From sequence record OR620964.1: a DNA stretch of 64,000 bases; one strand, 5' to 3'. The notes under the pieces were generated by a model, which searched no databases, was not told the DNA's origin, and saw only the letters and a list, made by a program, of their open reading frames with translations. Shown here piece by piece: positions 5,929 through 53,906 of this stretch. The stretch's first letter is position 1. The number at the start of each line of letters is the position of its first letter. The position numbers were made by a program, and so were the translations under genes.

Positions 5929-5952
5929 AAAACTGTAAATATAGAGTATAAT
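5929..5952 (+). promoter_or_regulatory. putative phage promoter motif, copy 1
   Basis: AAAACTGTAAATATAGAGTATA(AT), identical over 22 bp to 23852-23873; ends in TATAAT 12 nt upstream of the dam ATG. Confidence 0.6.
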
Positions 5953-14824: not shown

Positions 14825-16903
14825 ATGGTAATCAAACCACCTACAATGAAAGAGATCAACGCGCTGGAGAAACCTTGGCGCGGTATGAGCTTCTTTGCTG
14901 GATGCGGCGGCTCCAGTACAGGTCACAAGATGAGTGGCGTTAATATTCTGATTGCAAATGAGTTCGTAGACTCGGCGCGGTTATCATATGAAGCAAACCA
15001 TCCGACGACTAAAATGCTGCCGCAGGATATTCGCCGCTTAGACCCAGCTAAGATTTTGAAGTATCTGGGCCTTAAGAAAGGTGAATTGGATTTGCTTGAT
15101 GGTAGTCCTCCTTGCTTCACAGAAGAGACACTCATTCAGACACGTAGTGGCATGAAGTACATCAACCAAATAGTAGTTGATGACTTTGTTCTTACGCACA
15201 AGCAGCGCTATCGCCGTGTCGTTGAGCCTATGCGTCGCCAGTACACAGGACTAATGCATAAGATTGTTAGTTCTGTAAGTGAGAACAATGCTACACCTGA
15301 ACATCCGTACTATATTCGTCGTATGGAAAATGATGTGCTGTCTGAGCCACAGTGGGTAGATGCAAGAGACGTTCGTGTTGGCGATAAGGTAGCTATTCCT
15401 ACTAGCACACACGCGACTGCTGATCTATCTGAGTGCTCTCAACAGATTCGCCAGTGGGCACAGCATGATGAGTTCTGGTGGTTAGTAGGTCAGTGGGTAG
15501 CTAACGGTAGTATGTCTCGTTGTGGAACACACCGAGCTATTCGTTTTCGTACACACAGCTCCCGTGGTAATCAATTGCTTGAGCAGGCGCTCGACCTGCT
15601 GGAGCTAACATCTATTCAGACTGCGTACTGTGGCGGTAAGTATATAGAGCGCTTTGTTATGAATGAAGAACTGGCAACATTCTTCAAGCTGTTCCTAACA
15701 GATAGTGCTCAAGCCCGACAGATACCAGGCTTTGTTTTAGACTTACCTGACAGGTCACAGCGGCAATTTGTATTCGGCTATCAGTCTCGCTGCTATGAGT
15801 CTACTTTTGGTAAGGCGCTTGTCGTACAAACACGCAGTCTTCCTTTCATGACTGCTATGCGTCACCTAGTTGCTTCTGCGTTCAAGTGCCCGCTGTTTAG
15901 TTTCAATACGCAAGCAGCACCAGAAGAACTTCCTGTTAGTAACTTCACTTATCTACCTGAATCCGAGTGCGGCCAGTGGGTAAACCACCAAGCAGTATTC
16001 TTTATTCAGGAAGAAGATCGTGGTTTTATTCGCGATGCTGATGACTTACTTTGGGTTGATGTGCTGGCCAATACGCAATATGAATCTAGTGTGCAGGTAT
16101 ATAACTTTAGTGTATCACAGGATGAGACGTATGTTGCGACGAATACAGTCGTGCACAACTGTAAGGGGTTCTCTTCTGCTGGCGTTAAAGAGGAAGGCTG
16201 GGGACGGGAAGTAAAATATAGCGAGGATAAAGTCCAACACGTCGATGACCTGTTTGATGAGTTCTGCCGTATGCTTAGTGGTACAATGCCTAAAGTATTT
16301 ACGGCAGAGAATGTAAGTGGTCTGGTTAAAGGTGTGTCTCGTGGATTCTTCATTGAGATAATGAAAGAGTTTGATCGTATCGGATATAAAGTTCGAGCAC
16401 CTTTGATGAATGCTGCTTGGCTTGGCGTACCACAATCGAGAGAGCGTATTCTCTTTATGGGTGTGCGTAAGGATATACCGTTTGATGTGCCTGATGTTGA
16501 GGTTCAAGATACGATAGCCATTCTTGCAGATGCCTTGCCTCACATTGCTGCGTTTAAGGGAATCAGGAATGATATGATTACCTACATTCCTGCAATTAAC
16601 AGTCCGTGCAAGACAATAACAGCAACGGATAGTACGGCATATGAAACAGCACGTTTCAGTACCGCGGGCTTTATCGAAACTATGGAAGGCAAGCGCCGCA
16701 AGCTAACCATTGAAGAACTTAAAGTTATTTCTGGTATGCCTTCTGACTATAAGTTAGTTGGTACTTTCGAGCAACAATGGGAACGACTTGGTCGTGTCTG
16801 TGTTCCGCAGATGACACACGCTGCGTCTAAGGCACTTATCGAGCATGTGTTGATTCCTTATGCGAAGAAGCGTAAGAAGAAAGTTGGGGATATCTTCCGA
16901 TGA
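14825..16903 (+). CDS. C5-cytosine DNA methyltransferase-family enzyme with intein; predicted cytosine carboxymethyltransferase (CmoX-like)
   Basis: Motif I FFAGCGG, ANEF, motif IV GSPP|C (split by the intein), VI AENV, VIII PQSRER, IX R.LTIEELKVISGMP; motif X reads LGRVCVP instead of GNSV/GNAV (Arg codon 16793-16795). Confidence 0.88.
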   Translation: MVIKPPTMKEINALEKPWRGMSFFAGCGGSSTGHKMSGVNILIANEFVDSARLSYEANHPTTKMLPQDIRRLDPAKILKYLGLKKGELDLLDGSPPCFTEETLIQTRSGMKYINQIVVDDFVLTHKQRYRRVVEPMRRQYTGLMHKIVSSVSENNATPEHPYYIRRMENDVLSEPQWVDARDVRVGDKVAIPTSTHATADLSECSQQIRQWAQHDEFWWLVGQWVANGSMSRCGTHRAIRFRTHSSRGNQLLEQALDLLELTSIQTAYCGGKYIERFVMNEELATFFKLFLTDSAQARQIPGFVLDLPDRSQRQFVFGYQSRCYESTFGKALVVQTRSLPFMTAMRHLVASAFKCPLFSFNTQAAPEELPVSNFTYLPESECGQWVNHQAVFFIQEEDRGFIRDADDLLWVDVLANTQYESSVQVYNFSVSQDETYVATNTVVHNCKGFSSAGVKEEGWGREVKYSEDKVQHVDDLFDEFCRMLSGTMPKVFTAENVSGLVKGVSRGFFIEIMKEFDRIGYKVRAPLMNAAWLGVPQSRERILFMGVRKDIPFDVPDVEVQDTIAILADALPHIAAFKGIRNDMITYIPAINSPCKTITATDSTAYETARFSTAGFIETMEGKRRKLTIEELKVISGMPSDYKLVGTFEQQWERLGRVCVPQMTHAASKALIEHVLIPYAKKRKKKVGDIFR
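15113..16159 (+). mobile_element. intein (349 aa) with degenerate LAGLIDADG homing-endonuclease region
   Basis: Starts CFTEETLIQTRSG, block B TPEHPYY, block F VYNFSV, ends VVHN followed by +1 Cys; middle WWLVGQWVANGS and QFVFGYQSRC resemble eroded LAGLIDADG blocks. Confidence 0.93.
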
Positions 16904-17019
16904 GTTTATCAACGATCGGCATTGTCTTTGCTTGCTTTATCGTCGGCGCCTTTTTAGGCGTCGTATTGTTTGTGCGTGGCATTGCAGCCGCGTTCTCTGG
17001 TTGTAAGTTTTTCCGCTAG
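16900..17019 (+). CDS. small membrane protein (39 aa)
   Basis: MSLSTIGIVFACFIVGAFLGVVLFVRGIAAAFSGCKFFR; ATGA overlap with the transferase stop. Confidence 0.6.
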   Translation: MSLSTIGIVFACFIVGAFLGVVLFVRGIAAAFSGCKFFR

Positions 17020-17096
17020 TGGCAATCAGTACCTACCTTTTGAAGACGCTGCGATATGAAGGGAGGACATCCGTTCTCCTAGAAAGGTAGATCATT

Positions 17097-17366
17097 ATGA
17101 AAAGTGTATTAATCCGTCTACGTGAAAAAGATTCCATTATTGGCGTTAGTGCTAATACTCTTGACCGTTTGTGTCGTACTATGGGCTTGAACAAGACAGA
17201 AGTAACGCACTTAGCACTACGCAAAATGGCAGAACTGTGGAACATCGTAGAACCAGAACCTTGGTACGAGGCGGACGATGGTCCTTTCACGGAACAACAA
17301 TGGGCGGAAATCAAAAAGCACTCACTGGATATTCCAGATGAGCGTGTTACGAATAGGCTATTCTAA
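17097..17366 (+). CDS. ribbon-helix-helix antitoxin-like protein (orphan)
   Basis: VLIRLR strand, two helices LDRLCRTMGLNKTEVTHLALRKMA, acidic tail YEADDGPFTEQQW. Confidence 0.55.
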   Translation: MKSVLIRLREKDSIIGVSANTLDRLCRTMGLNKTEVTHLALRKMAELWNIVEPEPWYEADDGPFTEQQWAEIKKHSLDIPDERVTNRLF

Positions 17367-17461
17367 AAGCAGTCGGACATGGACGTCCTTTAGGAGTAGT
17401 GAATACTGGAATGCAAATCACGTAAGGAGTGTCCGTGCTAAAAGCCAACAACAATAATCCC

Positions 17462-17842
17462 ATGTCTAAGGTAGAGAAAGAGAAAGCGATTGATCTACTA
17501 ATGTCAAATCGCATTCATTACGAGAATGGTTATATTCGCCGTGCTCGTGGTGAGAATACGTTAGACAGCTATATCTTTCATATGTCAGAGATCCGCAACC
17601 TGCATATCCTACGCGTAGCAGAGAATAGCATTAGTATCCAGATCGATCTAAAATCTGGCAACGAGAAGTTTACGTTTAATGTGATTGATAATAGTCCTAA
17701 GCATACGCAGGGCTTGGGCTGGCCTATCGATTATATTAATGATGTTGTCCAATTAGCCAAAGCCATCCTAGACCTTCGCGATGCCTCACTAGGGTTGAAT
17801 AAGGCAAACTATTCGGAGCGTTGCTTTGATACAACCATTTAA
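17462..17842 (+). CDS. hypothetical protein
   Basis: 126-aa ORF from ATG 17462 (alternative GTG 17429 behind AAGGAG). Confidence 0.7.
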   Translation: MSKVEKEKAIDLLMSNRIHYENGYIRRARGENTLDSYIFHMSEIRNLHILRVAENSISIQIDLKSGNEKFTFNVIDNSPKHTQGLGWPIDYINDVVQLAKAILDLRDASLGLNKANYSERCFDTTI

Positions 17843-17963
17843 AGTATGCTATCACTGTCTTGCTGTGTACAACATACTCACTGCTCCAAAGACCAAAACA
17901 AAGGGCCTTAAGCAGAAAGAGCCAGCTTGCCCTACTTGCGGTAGTAAGTTGTATTTCTCATAA
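17826..17963 (+). CDS. small zinc-ribbon protein (45 aa), missed by the ORF track
   Basis: TTG start 7 nt after GGAG; MIQPFKVCYHCLAVYNILTAPKTKTKGLKQKEPACPTCGSKLYFS with two CxxC. Confidence 0.6.
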   Translation: MIQPFKVCYHCLAVYNILTAPKTKTKGLKQKEPACPTCGSKLYFS

Positions 17964-17964
17964 T

Positions 17965-17976
17965 ACTGTAAATATA
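17965..17976 (+). promoter_or_regulatory. partial copy of the putative promoter motif
   Basis: ACTGTAAATATA, intergenic, upstream of ORF 18005. Confidence 0.45.
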
Positions 17977-18004
17977 CAGAAGAGAAAGTACAGAGGAATA
18001 AACA

Positions 18005-18370
18005 ATGGAAGTAGTAGTTATTGATAAGCGTACACCTAATGAGTTACGCTACAGATTTCAAACTGATAATATAGGAAATATTGGTGCACGTAATGCCGCA
18101 CGAATTGATAACCTGCTAGGTGATGCTATGTTTGAGGCAGCATTTAAGTGTGGTATTGGAAAGGACTTCAAAGTAACGGTGTACAGTGATATCAATACAA
18201 TGCTTAAAGCATCTAATGGGGCTGAGTATCATATGTTTGATATTGCTGGGCCTGAACCAATGACTCCTGACCAATTGGCATCACGCGCATACCATCTGAT
18301 GCGGCAGGATAATTGTGTTGGTCTCGTATACGATCTCATGATTGGCCGCTGGTACTTGAGTTCTTTCTAA
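18005..18370 (+). CDS. hypothetical protein
   Basis: 121-aa ORF, GAGG RBS. Confidence 0.75.
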   Translation: MEVVVIDKRTPNELRYRFQTDNIGNIGARNAARIDNLLGDAMFEAAFKCGIGKDFKVTVYSDINTMLKASNGAEYHMFDIAGPEPMTPDQLASRAYHLMRQDNCVGLVYDLMIGRWYLSSF

Positions 18371-18538
18371 GGAAAATTCAGATGCTAGCTAAATTAAAGG
18401 TATGCGTCGAGCCACGGACTCCTCCCGATCCGCTACATCCAAAGTATTAGTATCAAGTAACTGAGTATCGCATATGCTGTACTCCAAACCAGTGATGGGC
18501 ACGGACGTGACCTATCCTAATTCCAAAAGGAATGTAAT

Positions 18539-19150
18539 ATGCAACAAACGTATAAAGAACACACATCGTATAGTTCTGCTTTCGCAATTGGCGAACATGC
18601 CATGATGGTACTGTCTAAGATTGATGACCATGAATGGCCTTTGGGTCAGATCGTAGGCGTTAACTATTCCCGTTACGGAATGTCCTACGATGTTGCGCCT
18701 CTTATTCTTGATGGCAGCCCTGAACAAGATATTATTGTTCACACTAAGTTACCTTTCTACGGCATTGTTGAAGAACGCCTTGCTATTCTTCCGACAACTG
18801 GCCTATCGGATAAGATGAAAGCCATAGTAGAAGAAGCGTCCTTATGGAATGTTCCTACTCCGCCCAACTCCCGTTATGATATAGGGGATCTTGTTCGTAT
18901 CGATTTTCAAATTTCTGATCAAGGACGTGGACGTTTCAGCGTACCAGTCCTTATCTATTCTGTTGGATACTCCGAAGGTACTGTGACATATGGGGTATCC
19001 ATTGACCGTAGTCTATACGCAGGTACAAAAGGATGGGACAATCTGTATGAGCGTATGGCTAAGGATTGTTACGACAACATTGATTGTGTTTTGATAGAGC
19101 CTGTTCGTGGCTGGACTACGCAATCAACTGCTGTTGATACTGTGGCCTAG
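18539..19150 (+). CDS. hypothetical protein with two SH3/KOW-like internal repeats
   Basis: FAIGEHAMM..GQIVGVNYS..SYDV and YDIGDLVRI..LIYSVGYS..TYGV. Confidence 0.7.
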   Translation: MQQTYKEHTSYSSAFAIGEHAMMVLSKIDDHEWPLGQIVGVNYSRYGMSYDVAPLILDGSPEQDIIVHTKLPFYGIVEERLAILPTTGLSDKMKAIVEEASLWNVPTPPNSRYDIGDLVRIDFQISDQGRGRFSVPVLIYSVGYSEGTVTYGVSIDRSLYAGTKGWDNLYERMAKDCYDNIDCVLIEPVRGWTTQSTAVDTVA

Positions 19151-19185
19151 TAACTTGACTTGGTGACTATCTGATAAACTAACCC

Positions 19186-19214
19186 AATGGGCGGCCTTCG
19201 GGTTGCCCATTTTT
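19186..19214 (+). terminator. intrinsic terminator
   Basis: AATGGGCGGCC-TTCG-GGTTGCCCATTTTT. Confidence 0.88.
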
Positions 19215-19230
19215 CGTTAAGGTACATACA

Positions 19231-19551
19231 GTGACAAAAGAAACATTGCACGACTGCAAAGATATTGATGATAGTTCTGTTCGTCTATTCATGGATCGTT
19301 GGTGGGAAATGGTAACAGGTGATAGTGAGCCTTACCAACTACAAATGCCTGAGGCTGTACGCGTATTTTTGATCTCTGTTGGTTATACAGAGCAACAGTT
19401 GGATAGCATGAAGATCGTTGGCGTATCCTCTCCAATAGCTGAAGGTGCTGACACAGAGTATGCCATGACAATAGCTGTTAATCCACCACCAACAAACAAA
19501 CAGATAGTTATTGTGTGGGACACGATCTCCAGAATGCAAATCAAGCAATAA
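19231..19551 (+). CDS. hypothetical protein
   Basis: 106-aa ORF, GTG start after AAGG. Confidence 0.65.
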   Translation: MTKETLHDCKDIDDSSVRLFMDRWWEMVTGDSEPYQLQMPEAVRVFLISVGYTEQQLDSMKIVGVSSPIAEGADTEYAMTIAVNPPPTNKQIVIVWDTISRMQIKQ

Positions 19552-19676
19552 CTTTGTACTTACTCAAGGCAACAGTTAACCTAATGCCAGATACTGGCAC
19601 CGTATGTTCTATTCATAGTGAGCACGGTATCCTGCATCTAAGAAAGTATATACCAGACTTGATATAGGAGCGATAC

Positions 19677-20009
19677 ATGCAAGATGATAATAAGTTTACT
19701 GTTCTCCGACTACAGTTTATCGAAGCTGCTTTCATTGTGTTTGGTATTATGAATAGAAACATGATTTGCGGTACGTTTGGTGTATCTGCAATAACTGCTT
19801 CCAGAGATATGTCTAAGTACCTATCACTCAATCCAGGCGTTGCATATAATCTTTGTACAAAGCAATGGGAGAAACAAGATTCCTTTGTACCAACTGCCAA
19901 TCTGCTTACAATGAATGCTGATACATTCATCATGAGAGTCGAACAACTATTTGATATTAAACTTGCAGTTGTTCCTGTCCGTACACAGCTTAGGGTTATA
20001 CAGAAATGA
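19677..20009 (+). CDS. stand-alone winged HTH resembling the N-terminal domain of CapW/BrxR WYL regulators
   Basis: RLQFIE...FGIMNR..I...FGVSAITASRDMSKYLSLNPG..YN...KQW....SFVP follows the RL.FI....G..NR..l...FG.S...AS.D...Y..L.P....Y.......F.P pattern; no WYL domain in 110 aa. Confidence 0.7.
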   Translation: MQDDNKFTVLRLQFIEAAFIVFGIMNRNMICGTFGVSAITASRDMSKYLSLNPGVAYNLCTKQWEKQDSFVPTANLLTMNADTFIMRVEQLFDIKLAVVPVRTQLRVIQK

Positions 20010-20521
20010 AAATAAATGAAGATAGGCGTATCATAGTATTAGACTCTGCTATGTTTGATACTCTAATGCATTATGCTAATATCGGGGCCGAGGAAGCTGG
20101 TAACACAGATGTAATTGAAAGCATCAAACGCCATGCATCAAAATTTAACTTGGCTGTTAAGCAAGAAAGAGCGAAAGAAAGAAAAGAGATAAGCATGGAT
20201 AGAATAGAGCATGGCCGCATGAAGAAACGAATGATGCGAATGCTTACCAATCGAACTATCGTCACGTTCGATACCGTTGATGGGTGTCCGAGTGTACGAA
20301 CAGAACATCGTGTATTCTATTATCTAGACCACACTAGCATGACAGCATCACCTATACGTATCTCATGGAACAAGTCGGCAGCATCAAGACTCTTGGTACC
20401 CTTCCGTTATATAAATACTGCTACTGCGGAACGGTATTTAGGTTATTCCAGTGTGTCTCACGTCAAGAATATTGTAGAGACACTTGAAGAAGTACCCGAA
20501 TCGTTTAAGGTGGTAGAATGA
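20006..20521 (+). CDS. hypothetical protein
   Basis: 171-aa ORF, ATGA overlap. Confidence 0.7.
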   Translation: MKINEDRRIIVLDSAMFDTLMHYANIGAEEAGNTDVIESIKRHASKFNLAVKQERAKERKEISMDRIEHGRMKKRMMRMLTNRTIVTFDTVDGCPSVRTEHRVFYYLDHTSMTASPIRISWNKSAASRLLVPFRYINTATAERYLGYSSVSHVKNIVETLEEVPESFKVVE

Positions 20522-20940
20522 AAGCACTTGCCATAAAGCAGCCCTGGGCTTGGCTCATTGTTCATGGATTCAAACCAGTAGAAAACAGAACTTGGGCAAC
20601 AAAGCACAGAGGTAAATTTCTTATCCATGCCTCAGCGTCTCGTCCTAGTGTATCTGATTATGAAATAGCTAGAGATATCTACCTACGGTCTAACTTACGT
20701 AATACAGTAGCGCGTTTCCCCGATCGCGATGCATTCGAGTTAGGTGGGATAGTTGGTATTGTTGACCTTGTTGATATTGTTACAGACCACATTAGTCCTT
20801 ACTTCTTTGGGCCTATTGGATTCGTTCTGGATAAGGCCAAGCCGTGTGAGCACATACCACTGAAAGGCAAACTCAACTTCTTCCCTACGGATATTGAAGA
20901 AGAAGACCTTGTTATATCAAGGAAGAGAGTGCGCAAATAG
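20518..20940 (+). CDS. ASCH domain protein
   Basis: MKALAIKQPWAWLIVHGFKPVENRTW...RGKFLIHAS; GGIVG; GKLNFF. Confidence 0.92.
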   Translation: MKALAIKQPWAWLIVHGFKPVENRTWATKHRGKFLIHASASRPSVSDYEIARDIYLRSNLRNTVARFPDRDAFELGGIVGIVDLVDIVTDHISPYFFGPIGFVLDKAKPCEHIPLKGKLNFFPTDIEEEDLVISRKRVRK

Positions 20941-20976: not shown

Positions 20977-21807
20977 ATGTCAGACGCATTGAAACAACAG
21001 GCAGTCGTAAAGTTTTATACTGGTACAGAGAATCCAATCCTTAAATGGAATAAGAATGAGTGGGTTATTGAAGGTGACCGTGAGGATGCGGAACTGCTAG
21101 CCGAATGTATTAACAAGCTAATAGCCCTAACTACACCTGAATCTGTGATATCTGCTGTCAGGTATAGCAGTGGTTGGATAGACGATTACCAGGATGGAGG
21201 TCATCGCTGCTGTAAAGCAGAACCAGATGGTGATCTAGTTGACTATCATGTGCTAGAATCTGCTGTGGTCATGCTTAAACATGCAGAAGATCGTGTACGA
21301 GAGTTAACTCTTCAGGTACAAGCATTGAAACAGACTCCAGTGGTAGACACAGTGCAGCCTACTGATTTATCAGATGCAGGTACTATGCGTAAGCTCGATC
21401 ACGTACTCCCAAGGACACAGGATGTGATCAATATCCGACATTTGCTAACACAGGATGTGATCAATATCCGACATTTGCTAACACTGGCTCGATGTTTATA
21501 TACATGTACGCCGGAAGCGCTATCAGCAATGGGGCCTTCTGTGCAGAGGCAGCGCTCGGTAAGTTTCTCGGATATCCCTGCCATGTTAGCAGAGTATAAA
21601 GCGCCTAGTGCCTTACTATTGGTAGGTCAATATGTTAAACGCACTGTGCGCCATACAGACTTGTATACCCTTCGTGGGGAGGCAGCAGGTTATGTAAACC
21701 CAGTATTAAGTCATGATGTTACCCTGGTACTTGTGTTGGACGGTGAGGTAATGCTGCATATGGTTACTGGTTGGGAAGCTAAACGACTGTCCTCGGAGGG
21801 AGCGTAA
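20977..21807 (+). CDS. hypothetical protein with an in-frame 11-aa tandem duplication
   Basis: 276-aa ORF, GAGG RBS; TQDVINIRHLL x2. Confidence 0.75.
   Translation: MSDALKQQAVVKFYTGTENPILKWNKNEWVIEGDREDAELLAECINKLIALTTPESVISAVRYSSGWIDDYQDGGHRCCKAEPDGDLVDYHVLESAVVMLKHAEDRVRELTLQVQALKQTPVVDTVQPTDLSDAGTMRKLDHVLPRTQDVINIRHLLTQDVINIRHLLTLARCLYTCTPEALSAMGPSVQRQRSVSFSDIPAMLAEYKAPSALLLVGQYVKRTVRHTDLYTLRGEAAGYVNPVLSHDVTLVLVLDGEVMLHMVTGWEAKRLSSEGA
21415..21484 (+). repeat. perfect 33-bp tandem duplication
   Basis: ACACAGGATGTGATCAATATCCGACATTTGCTA x2 plus ACAC. Confidence 0.95.
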
Positions 21808-23336: not shown

Positions 23337-23861
23337 ATGAAGCCTAAGACAGGAAGGAAGTTCCTACATGCCGCAAGCCACTCTCTTGATGCCATAGGAT
23401 GGAAGGTTAAAACACATCACGTATCTGGTTATGCATCTGGTAGCTTTGCTCTTACTATAGGCTATAGTTCTATCTGTATTCATACGCTGGACTATTATGA
23501 GGTTGAGCGACCCGACTTGCTGTATGTGCAAAAGCTGGATAAGATTCTAAATGCCATTCAATCATTTAGACAAGTAATGGGAACCAGAGAGATTTCCTCG
23601 CAGTGTGAGTGGCTGAATAGTGAACGTAGTGGCGCCACAGGATGTATCGCATTCTACAATGATACAGTCAGCGAGAACAAGATGGTTTTCTTTGAGATCA
23701 GTAGCTGTACAAACACTATCCGCCTATCTATATTTGATTTCAAGGCATATGAATTCAATAGACTGGATAGGCTGCTGGTACGTATCCATGATGAATTGGT
23801 CAGGCATCGTAGTGCCATGCAGGAAAGGATCGACTATATAGATTCTACAAGAAAACTGTAA
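23337..23861 (+). CDS. hypothetical protein
   Basis: ATG 23337 behind GAGG (the track start 23268 lies inside the terminator loop). Confidence 0.7.
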   Translation: MKPKTGRKFLHAASHSLDAIGWKVKTHHVSGYASGSFALTIGYSSICIHTLDYYEVERPDLLYVQKLDKILNAIQSFRQVMGTREISSQCEWLNSERSGATGCIAFYNDTVSENKMVFFEISSCTNTIRLSIFDFKAYEFNRLDRLLVRIHDELVRHRSAMQERIDYIDSTRKL

Positions 23862-23873
23862 ATATAGAGTATA
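23852..23873 (+). promoter_or_regulatory. putative phage promoter motif, copy 2
   Basis: AAAACTGTAAATATAGAGTATA identical to 5929-5950. Confidence 0.6.
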
Positions 23874-51323: not shown

Positions 51324-51818
51324 TTATGGTCTTATCCACAGTGCGCCTGGGGCTAACTCATTATCTTCTGCTGGGTCATTATCTTGGATAAATACCATAA
51401 GCACGCCTGGAGATCCTGTCTCACCCGTAGGGCCAGTACCTCCTGTCGGGCCTGGAACACCGCGACGTCCAATAGGGCCTTGCTTACCTTGTTTACCATC
51501 AGCGCCACGAGGACCAGGGCAGCCATCACCGCCTCGGTATCCATCCTTACCCATAGCACCATCAAGGCCGTCACGACCTCCATCCCCAGGCAGACCCTGC
51601 TCACCATATCCAATATCATTGATAGTAGGAAGACCAGTGATACTTAGCTTTCCAATGTTTGGGATGTTAATGTTGATCTGACCTGTAGCTCTGTCATACG
51701 AACCATTAAGTGTGGTCGTATCCTCAGGCGCGATCTTAACAGCAAGGCCAGTTTCATCAGACACAATCTGTCCTGTGCCATTGGCCTTAATCATCCCTAG
51801 ATCTACTTTTTCTACCAT
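51324..51818 (-). CDS. collagen-like virion fibre protein
   Basis: YDRATGQI..GLPT, Gly-X-Y run with GCPGP, ends GALWIRP. Confidence 0.85.
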   Translation of the reverse strand: MVEKVDLGMIKANGTGQIVSDETGLAVKIAPEDTTTLNGSYDRATGQININIPNIGKLSITGLPTINDIGYGEQGLPGDGGRDGLDGAMGKDGYRGGDGCPGPRGADGKQGKQGPIGRRGVPGPTGGTGPTGETGSPGVLMVFIQDNDPAEDNELAPGALWIRP

Positions 51819-51831
51819 TATAATATTCCTC

Positions 51832-52464
51832 TTATGGCCAAGTGATGCCTTGATCTTTAGTAGGATCTACCCAAACCGTTCCTTCCGAAACATTACCCGG
51901 GTTTACAGCACTTACAATTATGCGCAGCAATCCAGCAGGTCCCGGAGGGCCGTCTGGTCCCGTTGGTCCAGTAGCACCAGTATGTCCAGTAGGGCCTGTA
52001 CTACCACGTGGGCCTGTGTTACCGGGATTTCCACGTCTACCATCAGGGCCCGGCTCACCTCTTCGTCCGTCAGGCCCAGGCAGACCTTGTCGACCATCCT
52101 TTCCTGCTAGTCCTTGTTGTCCATCAGGGCCATCCGGTCCAGTACAGCCAACAGTACCAGGATTTCCATCACGACCATCACGCCCATCCTTTCCATCAGC
52201 ACCAGTTGCACCAATAGGGCCAGTACGTCCAACAGGTATGTTAGTTGGAGTAGGAAATCCTTTAACTGCAATAGAACTTCCGTTGGCGAACTTAAGCGTC
52301 AGCACACCTGATACTTCATCGTATGAACTTTCGGATGTAATCTCAGACGGGATATCAGATTCAGTACCTGATACTTGCAGAGATCCATTTGTCGCACGTA
52401 TTGGTGAATTGTTTGCTCCCGGTGCGCTGATTAACGTAGACGACACCTTCATTAATCCAGCCAT
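51832..52464 (-). CDS. collagen-like virion fibre protein
   Basis: YDEVSGVL..GFPT, long Gly-X-Y run with GCTGP, ends GTVWVDP. Confidence 0.85.
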   Translation of the reverse strand: MAGLMKVSSTLISAPGANNSPIRATNGSLQVSGTESDIPSEITSESSYDEVSGVLTLKFANGSSIAVKGFPTPTNIPVGRTGPIGATGADGKDGRDGRDGNPGTVGCTGPDGPDGQQGLAGKDGRQGLPGPDGRRGEPGPDGRRGNPGNTGPRGSTGPTGHTGATGPTGPDGPPGPAGLLRIIVSAVNPGNVSEGTVWVDPTKDQGITWP

Positions 52465-53906
52465 TAGTTTTTCTCCGCTTTCGATACTAGGTCAACATTG
52501 TGAACAAGAACATCACCAACAAAGTAGCAGTCATAAGGCTCCACATCTATATCAATAGTATCCACATCACCATCAATCTTCTGTGCTTCATAGATAACAG
52601 CAATAAGACCGTTACGGGATATAGTAGACATTGACCTAGTTACATCACGGGCAGGTAGATATTTCCACTCAGCGTTATCCAATACAAGTATCGGGTGCTC
52701 ATGTGTGAATTTCTGTCCGTTAATCAGGTAGCAATGCGTTTCAGTGCCGAATGTAATAGCTTTTACCGTAGCGTATACAGGACGTCCCTTAAGCGAAGAG
52801 GCTGTCCATCCACGGAAGTCTTTTGGCTGTCTTGAATAGGAGGACAAGCAATCACCGACACGAATATCCTTAGCATCCTTATCACCTATGATGGTCGATA
52901 TAACTGAACCAAACACAATACACCCTTTAGGATTGGCAGATGTAGGATTATATGCAACAATTGATATTGCAGCAGTGGCTTTCTTCGTTGGTCGATTGGC
53001 CTGACCCATATCAGTAACAGTGCAGTAGATATTGCCCTTCAATACTATATTAGCCCCATAACCTAAGCGCTGTGCGTAATGAAGCTCTACGATATTTGAT
53101 GTATCGGCATCGAGCGTCACACCATCAATCTTATCAACTGTCCACTGGTACTTATATGGCCCTATCCCACCACGAACGTTAACAGGTAAGTAAGCATCTG
53201 CGGCAAACAGGTCAGAGTTTGGTGCTATGCGCGTACCTACAGTAGATATAGAACTCACTGAGGCAGATAATGGTACTATGACTGGAAGAGGTGGAGCAGG
53301 AGTCACGTTTGCAGTAGGGAATAACCACATGCCTATACGTCTATCCTCTGGAGTAGTAGCACTAACTACCGCAGTCTCTATAGGCGCAGGCCCTGTTTCG
53401 CCTCGTGCACCAGATATACAGTTAGGACCATCGTTTCCTCTTGGGCCGTCTGGTCCTGTTGGGCCAGTAGGTCCCGTAGCACCATCTGGCCCTGGCTTTC
53501 CTGCATATCCTTGAATACCCTCTTCTCCATCCTCTCCGTCGTCACCATCATCACCATCAATTCCATCAAGCCCACGAGCACCAGGGCGCCCGGCGCAACC
53601 AGCTAGTCCAGTTGATCCATCACGCCCATTGCGCCCATCTTTACCCGGCTGTCCAGTTCCACCTCGTTTACCGGGCAGTCCTTGCCCAAACATTGCTATA
53701 GTTGGAAGTCCACCTATAGTAACGAGTTCGCCGTTCTTGCGAACAATAACGAGTTGTCCTTTCTTTCCGTTGTACTTGACGTCAGCAATGAGTTTATCTT
53801 GCTGTAGATCTGTAGACGCGAAATCCAAACTGCCGCCTGCACCAATAGCTTGCTTACCTTCTTGATTGAGAGTAGTGCTCACTTGGTTCAAACGAAGTGT
53901 TGTCAT
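52464..53906 (-). CDS. collagen-like fibre protein with C-terminal Hint domain
   Basis: YNGKKGQL..GLPT, Gly-X-Y run with GCAG, beta domain, then CIVFGS...VLVHN. Confidence 0.85.
   Translation of the reverse strand: MTTLRLNQVSTTLNQEGKQAIGAGGSLDFASTDLQQDKLIADVKYNGKKGQLVIVRKNGELVTIGGLPTIAMFGQGLPGKRGGTGQPGKDGRNGRDGSTGLAGCAGRPGARGLDGIDGDDGDDGEDGEEGIQGYAGKPGPDGATGPTGPTGPDGPRGNDGPNCISGARGETGPAPIETAVVSATTPEDRRIGMWLFPTANVTPAPPLPVIVPLSASVSSISTVGTRIAPNSDLFAADAYLPVNVRGGIGPYKYQWTVDKIDGVTLDADTSNIVELHYAQRLGYGANIVLKGNIYCTVTDMGQANRPTKKATAAISIVAYNPTSANPKGCIVFGSVISTIIGDKDAKDIRVGDCLSSYSRQPKDFRGWTASSLKGRPVYATVKAITFGTETHCYLINGQKFTHEHPILVLDNAEWKYLPARDVTRSMSTISRNGLIAVIYEAQKIDGDVDTIDIDVEPYDCYFVGDVLVHNVDLVSKAEKN
52497..52922 (-). 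other. Hint (intein-like) autoprocessing domain, 142 aa, no endonuclease
   Basis: G|CIVFGSVI, DIRVGD, FTHEHPI, DIDVEPYDCYFVGDVLVHN|V. Confidence 0.85.

Follow-up and report, generated by a model that had tools for sequence, protein, structure and literature searches.

Gene gp285 of the Yersinia jumbo phage fHe-Yen9-02 (OR620964.1, 248,678 bp), whose host is Y. enterocolitica O:9, is a complete, selected, accessory early gene that codes for the DNA-binding head of CapW/BrxR-class regulators alone. The gene (fHeYen902_285, annotated as a hypothetical protein) lies within the window analysed here, namely the final 64 kb of the phage genome, in which each window position equals the record position minus 184,678. 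Comparison with a 94%-identical metagenome relative reveals 14 synonymous and 7 non-synonymous differences, corresponding to a ratio of non-synonymous to synonymous substitution rates (dN/dS) of 0.13, and on this basis gp285 is a real gene under purifying selection.

Head fold, DNA-contact residues and the missing sensor

The initial annotation described gp285 as a 110-residue open reading frame following the pattern of the CapW/BrxR N-terminal winged helix-turn-helix (wHTH), and profile and structure comparisons agree with that assignment. Taken singly, the gp285 sequence finds no match in direct scans of the Pfam (in a copy without PF26109), NCBIfam, PADLOC and PHROGs libraries. Its two top matches in a single-sequence search of the PDB are the CapW entries 9c5g and 7tb5 at weak E-values of 0.5–0.7, and tblastn with gp285 as the sole query retrieves annotated WYL-domain proteins encoded on plasmids at an E-value of 6e-6. 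Precomputed matches to Pfam PF26109 (WHD_BrxR) are found in a protein 94% identical to gp285 (P0002), in one 66% identical (P0003) and in six more short members. An exhaustive hidden Markov model (HMM) search of 1.8 billion representatives recovers 118 proteins at E ≤ 1e-3. A profile, A4, was assembled from 26 short members, with the long WYL proteins kept out so that they could not shape its matches. Searched against the PDB, A4 matches exactly the five solved CapW/BrxR sequences (7tb6, 7tb5, 9c5g, 7qfz and 7t8k; E 1.8e-16 to 1.5e-8), always at the N-terminus and over chain residues ~10–95. Additionally, alignment of A4 with 13 long WYL proteins in hhalign gives a probability of 99.5% (E 3e-23) and pairs gp285 residues 4–85 with residues 6–86 of the long proteins.

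The AlphaFold2 model of gp285, computed from a 110-sequence alignment, has a predicted local distance difference test (pLDDT) score of 91.9 and is confident to about residue 100; an earlier run on a 3-sequence alignment (pLDDT 40) was unusable. The core comprises helix 1 (residues 4–21), helix 2 (27–34), the recognition helix (38–51) and a β-wing formed by residues 55–58 and 63–66. The comparison with CapW/BrxR structures that the initial annotation proposed was carried out in Foldseek, and all 14 significant PDB matches of the model are CapW or BrxR. Superposition with VIA-align gives a Z-score of 14.4 against CapW 7tb5 (2.0 Å over 90 residues) and of 13.8 against DNA-bound BrxR 7t8k (2.3 Å over 92 residues). 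The CapW/BrxR scores extend down to Z 10.1 and then fall sharply to Z 7.4 for generic winged helices, and this drop identifies the head as specifically of the CapW/BrxR type. For example, the score of the activator DriD (8tpk) is only Z 6.1, over 63 residues, which lies within the generic winged-helix background, and neither gp285 nor A4 retrieves a DriD sequence in the PDB searches. The protein thus carries the N-terminal BrxR/CapW-type wHTH of wHTH-WYL-WCX regulators, and the arrangement of DriD/PafBC-type activators, in which a DriD-type helix-turn-helix (HTH) head precedes a three-helix bundle and a WYL domain, is not found in it.

The residues through which CapW and BrxR contact DNA are largely retained. 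Residues R27 (positions 19755-19757), S37, T40 and S42 of gp285 correspond in the PDB-search alignments to R32, S42, Q45 and S47 of Stenotrophomonas maltophilia CapW; R27, S37 and S42 are identical to their counterparts, and T40 stands in place of Q45. In CapW, both the R32A substitution and the S42A/Q45A/S47A triple substitution abolish operator binding (PMC9122588). In Acinetobacter BrxR, base-specific contacts are made by S37-R38-Q39-Q40 (PMC9122589), and the contact stretch of gp285 occupies the same place. Moreover, the near-invariant positions of the short family (R11, I15, G23, R27, F34, A41, D44 and Y48) are the signature of the long family, while position 40 and its neighbours vary, as expected of specificity-determining residues. 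Since both the contact residues and the signature positions are kept, DNA binding by gp285 is very likely retained, as far as sequence can tell.

The sensor, in contrast to the head, is absent. In all eight long matches tested, the Pfam WYL domain begins at residues 116–135, and gp285 stops at residue 110. The statement that the frame ends where the WYL domain would start is therefore roughly right, with the refinement that the stop falls inside the linker of the long relatives. No central WYL (Sm/SH3-like) ligand-binding domain is present in gp285, and no sequence is left for the WCX dimerisation domain or for the scaffold of a domain-swapped homodimer. A six-frame search of the whole 248-kb phage with PF13280 (WYL) gives no match at E ≤ 1, and the same search produced matches in 9 of 14 control genomes; the description of gp285 as a phage-encoded sensor-less head consequently stands. 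The head itself is present in one copy in the entire genome. The downstream gene gp286 was considered as a split-off WYL-WCX half, given that the two lengths sum to ~281 residues and that the gp285 stop and gp286 start overlap as ATGA. This candidate was rejected, as gp286 yields no WYL or other signal and its 40%-identical homologue Y3_059 (E 3e-39) occurs in Erwinia phage Y3 without a wHTH partner. Collectively, these features make gp285 in all probability a sequence-specific, ligand-blind DNA binder.

Stand-alone heads in phages and prophages

The relatives gathered by the HMM search include about 100 representative clusters of stand-alone heads of 65–140 residues, and two size classes can be distinguished among them. 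About 50 'tailed' proteins of 95–140 residues carry a conserved tail of ~18 residues that cannot be aligned to the long family, and about 40 'mini' heads of 65–94 residues end directly after the wing. The long WYL proteins in the set number 14 and have the characterised architecture. As defined here, the tailed subgroup consists of complete, phage-borne genes for 95–140 residues that encode a head followed by a tail of the form hydrophobic-x-K-hydrophobic...G-V, and gp285 belongs to it, with A4 matching over positions 2–108 of 109. In the gp285 tail (residues 93–110) hydrophobic residues alternate, and its relatives end in the G-V motif. This segment is kept across the tailed proteins in A4; in hhalign, nothing beyond gp285 residue 85 aligns to the long family. 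A separate arrangement is seen in P0020, a complete gene for 206 residues on a phage-like metagenomic contig (L045 2525-3145), in which two BrxR-type heads are fused in tandem as a natural 'covalent dimer' without WYL.

In a weakly resolved tree of 69 columns, gp285 falls in a 14-member clade composed of short proteins only (Shimodaira–Hasegawa-like approximate likelihood-ratio support 90), with the long proteins mostly elsewhere. Some of the short entries are separated from a neighbouring long protein by very short branches only, and these are probably fragments cut off at contig ends. A recent capture of gp285 from a host regulator was considered and is not supported: its closest relatives are short without exception, long forms come in only at E-values from ~1e-6, and its clade is exclusively short. 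The initial annotation had spoken of a 'phage copy without the sensor'; by the HMM search and the tree, gp285 is no one-off or fresh truncation but a member of an old, diversified family of stand-alone heads, to judge from its sequences.

Within this family, gp285 shares 28% identity with the short protein of Nafs113, 38% with that of Arash and 45% with P0004. Searches by tblastn with three short members find a relative in only four other deposited phages, namely Arash, LIET2, Nafs113 and Sonora. No PHROG in PHROGs v4 covers the stand-alone heads, no paper describing stand-alone BrxR/CapW heads in phages was found in a literature search, and pattern-based locus searches of IMG/VR and GTDB genomes found nothing. 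What is known is the domain itself, which has a Pfam model; what appears to be new is the stand-alone, phage-borne, tail-bearing and diversified family. The 109-residue protein gp136c of Salmonella phage Arash (L002 3995-4324) is annotated as a 'WYL domain-containing protein', the sole name that any source attaches to the family. The short-head profile covers nearly its whole length, leaving no room for a WYL domain, and the label therefore looks like annotation carry-over.

All family contexts inspected lie within operons belonging to phages or prophages, to apparent phage-plasmids or to phage-like contigs. These are early, nin-like or accessory operons in which the gene belongs to a series of small genes that point the same way and usually overlap at their stops and starts; the family genes are translationally coupled and lack a promoter of their own. 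Specifically, MT-A70 methylase and DUF968/VRR-NUC genes flank the head gene in the nin-like region of a lambdoid prophage, and exc and int follow it in the early-left operon of a prophage. Further members occur in a Serratia prophage, in the phages Arash, Nafs113/LIET2 and Sonora, on one Enterobacter plasmid, and on contigs of Pantoea and Salmonella; the plasmid and these contigs resemble phage-plasmids. Regulators of the CapW/BrxR type stand beside a defence operon that they repress through a palindromic operator at its promoter, and such a placement is not seen for the short heads: none of the 12 family contexts inspected, nor that of gp285 itself, adjoins a recognised defence system.

Two further observations concern these contexts. 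The 56.8-kb Salmonella contig L005, which resembles a phage-plasmid, encodes two distinct short-head paralogues (P0005 and P0011) 17 genes apart. In addition, short heads recur beside or near phage DNA methyltransferases, among them MT-A70 and C5 methylases (L007 5360-6330; L015 2987-6714; L003 3001-4258; window 14825-20009). An MT-A70 gene lies directly upstream in L007 and L008, a methylase gene is present in L015, and Nafs113 encodes a cytosine methyltransferase; in fHe-Yen9-02 a CmoX-type enzyme is encoded 2.8 kb upstream of gp285. This proximity could be due to chance in accessory regions.

The slot that gp285 occupies is variable. Relatives of fHe-Yen9-02 comprise about 19 Erwinia and Dickeya jumbo phages of ~260 kb. 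Among them, Erwinia phage Y3 keeps homologues of gp286 (40% identical to Y3_059) and of gp287, which has an ASCH domain (window 20006-20940, matching L042 5152-6074), but carries an unrelated 94-residue open reading frame in the gp285 slot, and the family profile has no match in the whole Y3 genome. Because Y3 retains the neighbours and swaps the gene in front of them, gp285 is an accessory gene, a status that fits a host-directed or counter-defence role better than that of a core transcription factor. In fHe-Yen9-02, small genes of early appearance surround gp285, which lacks a promoter or operator region of its own. The gap between gp283 and gp285 measures 125 nucleotides (nt) here and 45 nt in a close relative, and no repeated palindrome was found near the gene.

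Possible action on WYL-type operators and its alternatives

Candidate targets were sought among the long regulators of enterobacteria. The short-family profile finds matches in 23 of 301 enterobacterial species genomes (GTDB family). With two exceptions these matches are open frames of ~300 residues and thus long regulators, whose heads are 22–39% identical to gp285. The closest, L039, is a 299-residue protein with a confirmed WYL domain; it is encoded on a conjugative element (ICE, integrative and conjugative element) beside ArdC, ~3.5 kb from the Hachiman genes HamA/HamB. A 295-residue regulator on the Yersinia ruckeri plasmid pYRKMM821_1 is 33% identical to gp285, and its WYL match lies below the Pfam threshold. 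Threonine at the position of CapW Q45 occurs in only 2 of 32 long relatives, and these are the same two proteins. Their recognition helices begin with SEITATR and SEITASR, as do those of short phage proteins (P0014/P0024 and Arash), and differ by one residue from the SAITASR of gp285. The overall wHTH identity of these SEIT-type regulators to gp285 is only 33–39%, and the tree does not join them to it.

Both SEIT-type regulators belong to a two-gene cassette in which the wHTH-WYL gene is divergent to a gene for ~56 residues (L043 3633-4867 on the Y. ruckeri plasmid; L039 9175-10290). Each intergenic region contains a palindrome of ~19 bp with the core TATCA-N3-TGATA, which on this evidence is likely an operator. 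In the fHe-Yen9-02 genome this core occurs in one exact copy, at the level of controls and outside the window, and in Arash and Nafs113 it does not occur. Sites with one mismatch number 9 in the window against 4.1 expected, a count reached by 3 of 100 shuffles. Enrichment of the motif is seen in none of fHe-Yen9-02, Arash, Nafs113 and Y3, and there is therefore no sign of self-targeting by the phages, the motif itself being a candidate.

These elements can be assembled into a proposed sequence of events. First, gp285, probably dimerised through its own tail, would bind a short palindromic operator. Because it lacks the WYL domain that senses single-stranded DNA (ssDNA), it would then stay on the DNA while ssDNA generated by infection makes resident WYL repressors release. 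Its likeliest targets would be operators of WYL-type repressors on host-resident mobile elements and in defence islands, and occupancy would keep such operons at the repressed level during infection. The most concrete candidates would be the ~19-bp TATCA-N3-TGATA palindromes upstream of the rare SEITAS/TR long regulators. That gp285 acts in this manner, as an uninducible competitor on host or mobile-element WYL-type operators, an idea raised for host defence operators in the initial annotation, is a tentative proposal held at clearly less than even odds. The full reading extends it to the family, whose members would be dominant uninducible repressors on WYL-gated immune or mobile-element operators and would block the ssDNA-triggered boost of defence, with gp285 as the Yersinia jumbo-phage example and TATCA-N3-TGATA-type operators as the predicted target; its probability is put at roughly 0.3.

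Several features speak for such a role, including the kinship specific to regulators of defence islands, the accessory status of the gene, the want of a promoter of its own, the lack of any sign of self-targeting and the match of the recognition helix, together with the tandem wHTH-wHTH fusion P0020 as a natural instance of two heads acting together. Other evidence weighs against it. CapW mutants that repress constitutively, with no derepression, protect E. coli from lambda like the wild type (PMC9122588), and a phage may accordingly gain little by locking the repressed state. Derepression of BrxR is dispensable for blocking a first infection, and parallel WYL repressors act without regulatory cross-talk (bioRxiv 10.1101/2025.11.13.688357), so that gp285 would need to match the specificity of the operator it occupies. 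The isolated DNA-binding domain of DriD is monomeric and did not copurify with DNA (PMC12041258). On the side of the candidate targets, gp285 differs from the SEIT regulators at position 38, where BrxR makes a base contact; the SEIT long subtype is rare, occurring in 1 of the 301 sampled enterobacterial species genomes; and the operator motif is based on only two upstream regions. Finally, Pantoea alvi, which has a short member on a phage-plasmid-like contig, contains no detectable long BrxR-type protein. A second match in the P. alvi genome was examined as a BrxR relative and rejected, being a DeoR-type GlpR.

Resemblance to CapW and BrxR could instead stem from a domain pool shared by mobile elements, with gp285 working as an ordinary phage transcription factor that binds operators of its own or of co-resident phages and times early or middle expression. 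Most small phage HTH or wHTH proteins control phage genes, the long BrxR/CapW regulators themselves reside on mobile elements, and gp285 combines its retained DNA-binding residues with a place in an early-looking gene run. Against a regulator of this kind, the gene is not conserved in Y3 although its flanking genes are, it has no upstream region of its own or repeated palindrome nearby, and its distribution over unrelated phage types is patchy; the members in lambdoid prophages, moreover, occupy the dispensable nin-like region and not the immunity region. On balance this explanation is unlikely, though a serious contender.

DNA binding might also serve purposes other than transcription, such as marking or organising phage DNA, replication, partition, or partnership with DNA-modification enzymes. 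The frequent vicinity of DNA methyltransferases and the location of several members on plasmids or phage-plasmid-like contigs would suit such an accessory, as would weak fold matches to the centromere binders TubR and AspA. Methyltransferases are, however, common in these regions, so the association may be fortuitous; CapW/BrxR match the fold far better than the partition proteins do, and nothing ties gp285 to the ParB-like gene ~5 kb upstream. A non-transcriptional role is accordingly considered improbable.

Less probable again, with only a slight chance of being correct, is a decoy acting at the protein level, in which the free head docks on the WYL/linker surface of host wHTH-WYL-WCX regulators, or pairs with them in mixed dimers, and disturbs their switching. 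In CapW, the main packing partner of each WYL domain is the wHTH of the opposite protomer (PMC9122588), and the isolated DNA-binding domain of DriD binds the remainder of DriD in trans, in an interaction that is weakened by ssDNA (PMC12041258). That contact is weak even so (dissociation constant ~15 µM), gp285 is only 22–39% identical to the enterobacterial long wHTHs, and strong conservation in the short family falls on the positions that face DNA.

The remaining possibility, that gp285 is a decaying, functionless remnant or pseudogene of a captured host regulator gene, as its being shorter than every characterised family member and lacking two of three domains might suggest, is effectively refuted by the dN/dS value and the family data: about 100 stand-alone clusters with a conserved tail of their own, all of them complete genes inside contigs, and a nearest clade that holds only short proteins.

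Setting in the window and comparison with known systems

The features of gp285 and its surroundings are collected in the table. The terminator-like hairpin forms the upstream edge of the gp283-gp285-gp286-gp287 gene run.

Table. Positions of gp285, its parts and adjoining features in the window
Feature	Position	Strand	Description and basis
Intrinsic-terminator-like hairpin, strong	19186..19211	+	11-bp stem followed by a T run, just 5' of gp283; consensus scan
gp285 ribosome-binding site, AGGAG (Shine-Dalgarno)	19666..19670	+	6 nt 5' of the ATG; read from sequence
gp285	19677..20009	+	Open reading frame from ATG to TGA, 110 residues; stand-alone BrxR/CapW-type wHTH protein
wHTH core, residues 4-72	19686..19892	+	AlphaFold2, pLDDT above 95; aligned to CapW/BrxR chain residues ~10-90
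Recognition helix start, residues 37-51 (SAITASRDMSKY...)	19785..19829	+	Residue mapping from PDB-search alignments
Helix 4 (81-92) and ~18-residue short-family-specific tail (93-110)	19893..20006	+	A4, hhalign and model
gp286	20006..20521	+	171 residues; start overlaps the gp285 stop; no WYL or other family match

Other features of the window lie outside the head itself. The annotated 37-residue coding sequence gp284 (19554-19667) falls within a stretch of ~80 nt that is missing from the 94%-related phage contig, in keeping with the gap of 45 against 125 nt, and probably does not represent a gene. A 17-nt motif, ACTGTAAATATAGAGTA, occurs at 5932-5948, 17965-17981 and 23855-23871, always on the plus strand and between genes, with two of the three copies exact; three copies were reached in none of 100 shuffles, and the motif is possibly a phage promoter or regulatory site. 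In gp288, a perfect 33-bp tandem duplication (21415-21480) repeats a peptide of 11 residues. On the minus strand, positions 51400-53500 contain GGN-CCN repeats with a nine-nucleotide period that point to a collagen-like repeat protein, probably a fibre.

WYL-domain repressors, including CapW, BrxR and their relatives, control many anti-phage systems, and the reason for their inducibility is debated. According to the argument of a recent preprint, survivors are primed by induction and can then overwhelm the counter-defences of phages. Were phages found to carry ligand-blind heads for the purpose outlined above, this would amount to direct evolutionary evidence for the importance of the inducible step in nature, and it would define a new class of counter-defence, the silencing of immune genes by regulator mimicry (transcriptional mimicry). 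The family also offers experimental material, with about 100 clusters, cultured phages of Yersinia, Salmonella, Pantoea and Stenotrophomonas, and a specific pairing of helix and operator. Should the heads regulate only phage genes, the analysis would still name an unannotated phage family, correct the label of Arash gp136c and show the head working without its sensor.

Aca proteins and AcrIIA1 are small phage HTH repressors that act in the conflict between phage and defence, Aca by repressing the phage's own anti-CRISPR promoter. Their HTH family is a different one, and no homology to gp285 was found.

Among the characterised regulators, CapW (7TB5, 7TB6, 9C5G), the wHTH-WYL-WCX protein associated with the cyclic-oligonucleotide-based antiphage signalling system (CBASS), has the same N-terminal wHTH and following helix as gp285 (Z 14.4; profile E 2e-16). 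The signature residues are shared throughout, and R32, S42 and S47 of CapW are conserved, with Gln45 replaced by Thr. Unlike CapW, gp285 has no WYL or WCX domain, ssDNA sensor or domain-swapped dimer scaffold, carries its own ~18-residue tail, and is encoded in a phage operon instead of upstream of a defence operon. BrxR (7T8K/7T8L, 7QFZ), associated with bacteriophage exclusion (BREX), displays the same head fold, including in its DNA-bound form, at Z 12–14 and a root-mean-square deviation of 2.1–3.1 Å over 89–94 residues. Its base-contacting residues are SRQQ where gp285 has SAIT, and a different operator is expected for gp285 on that account; gp285 furthermore lacks the sensor and dimerisation domains and is not adjacent to BREX.

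A further set of counterparts is formed by the phage and prophage proteins consisting of the PF26109 (WHD_BrxR) domain alone, for example Arash gp136c, ORF74 of Pantoea phages LIET2/Nafs113 and gp088 of Stenotrophomonas phage Sonora, none of which has a described function. At 28–45% identity, these proteins share with gp285 the length class, the tail of the 95–140-residue subgroup and the genomic setting, and gp285 very probably belongs to this group.

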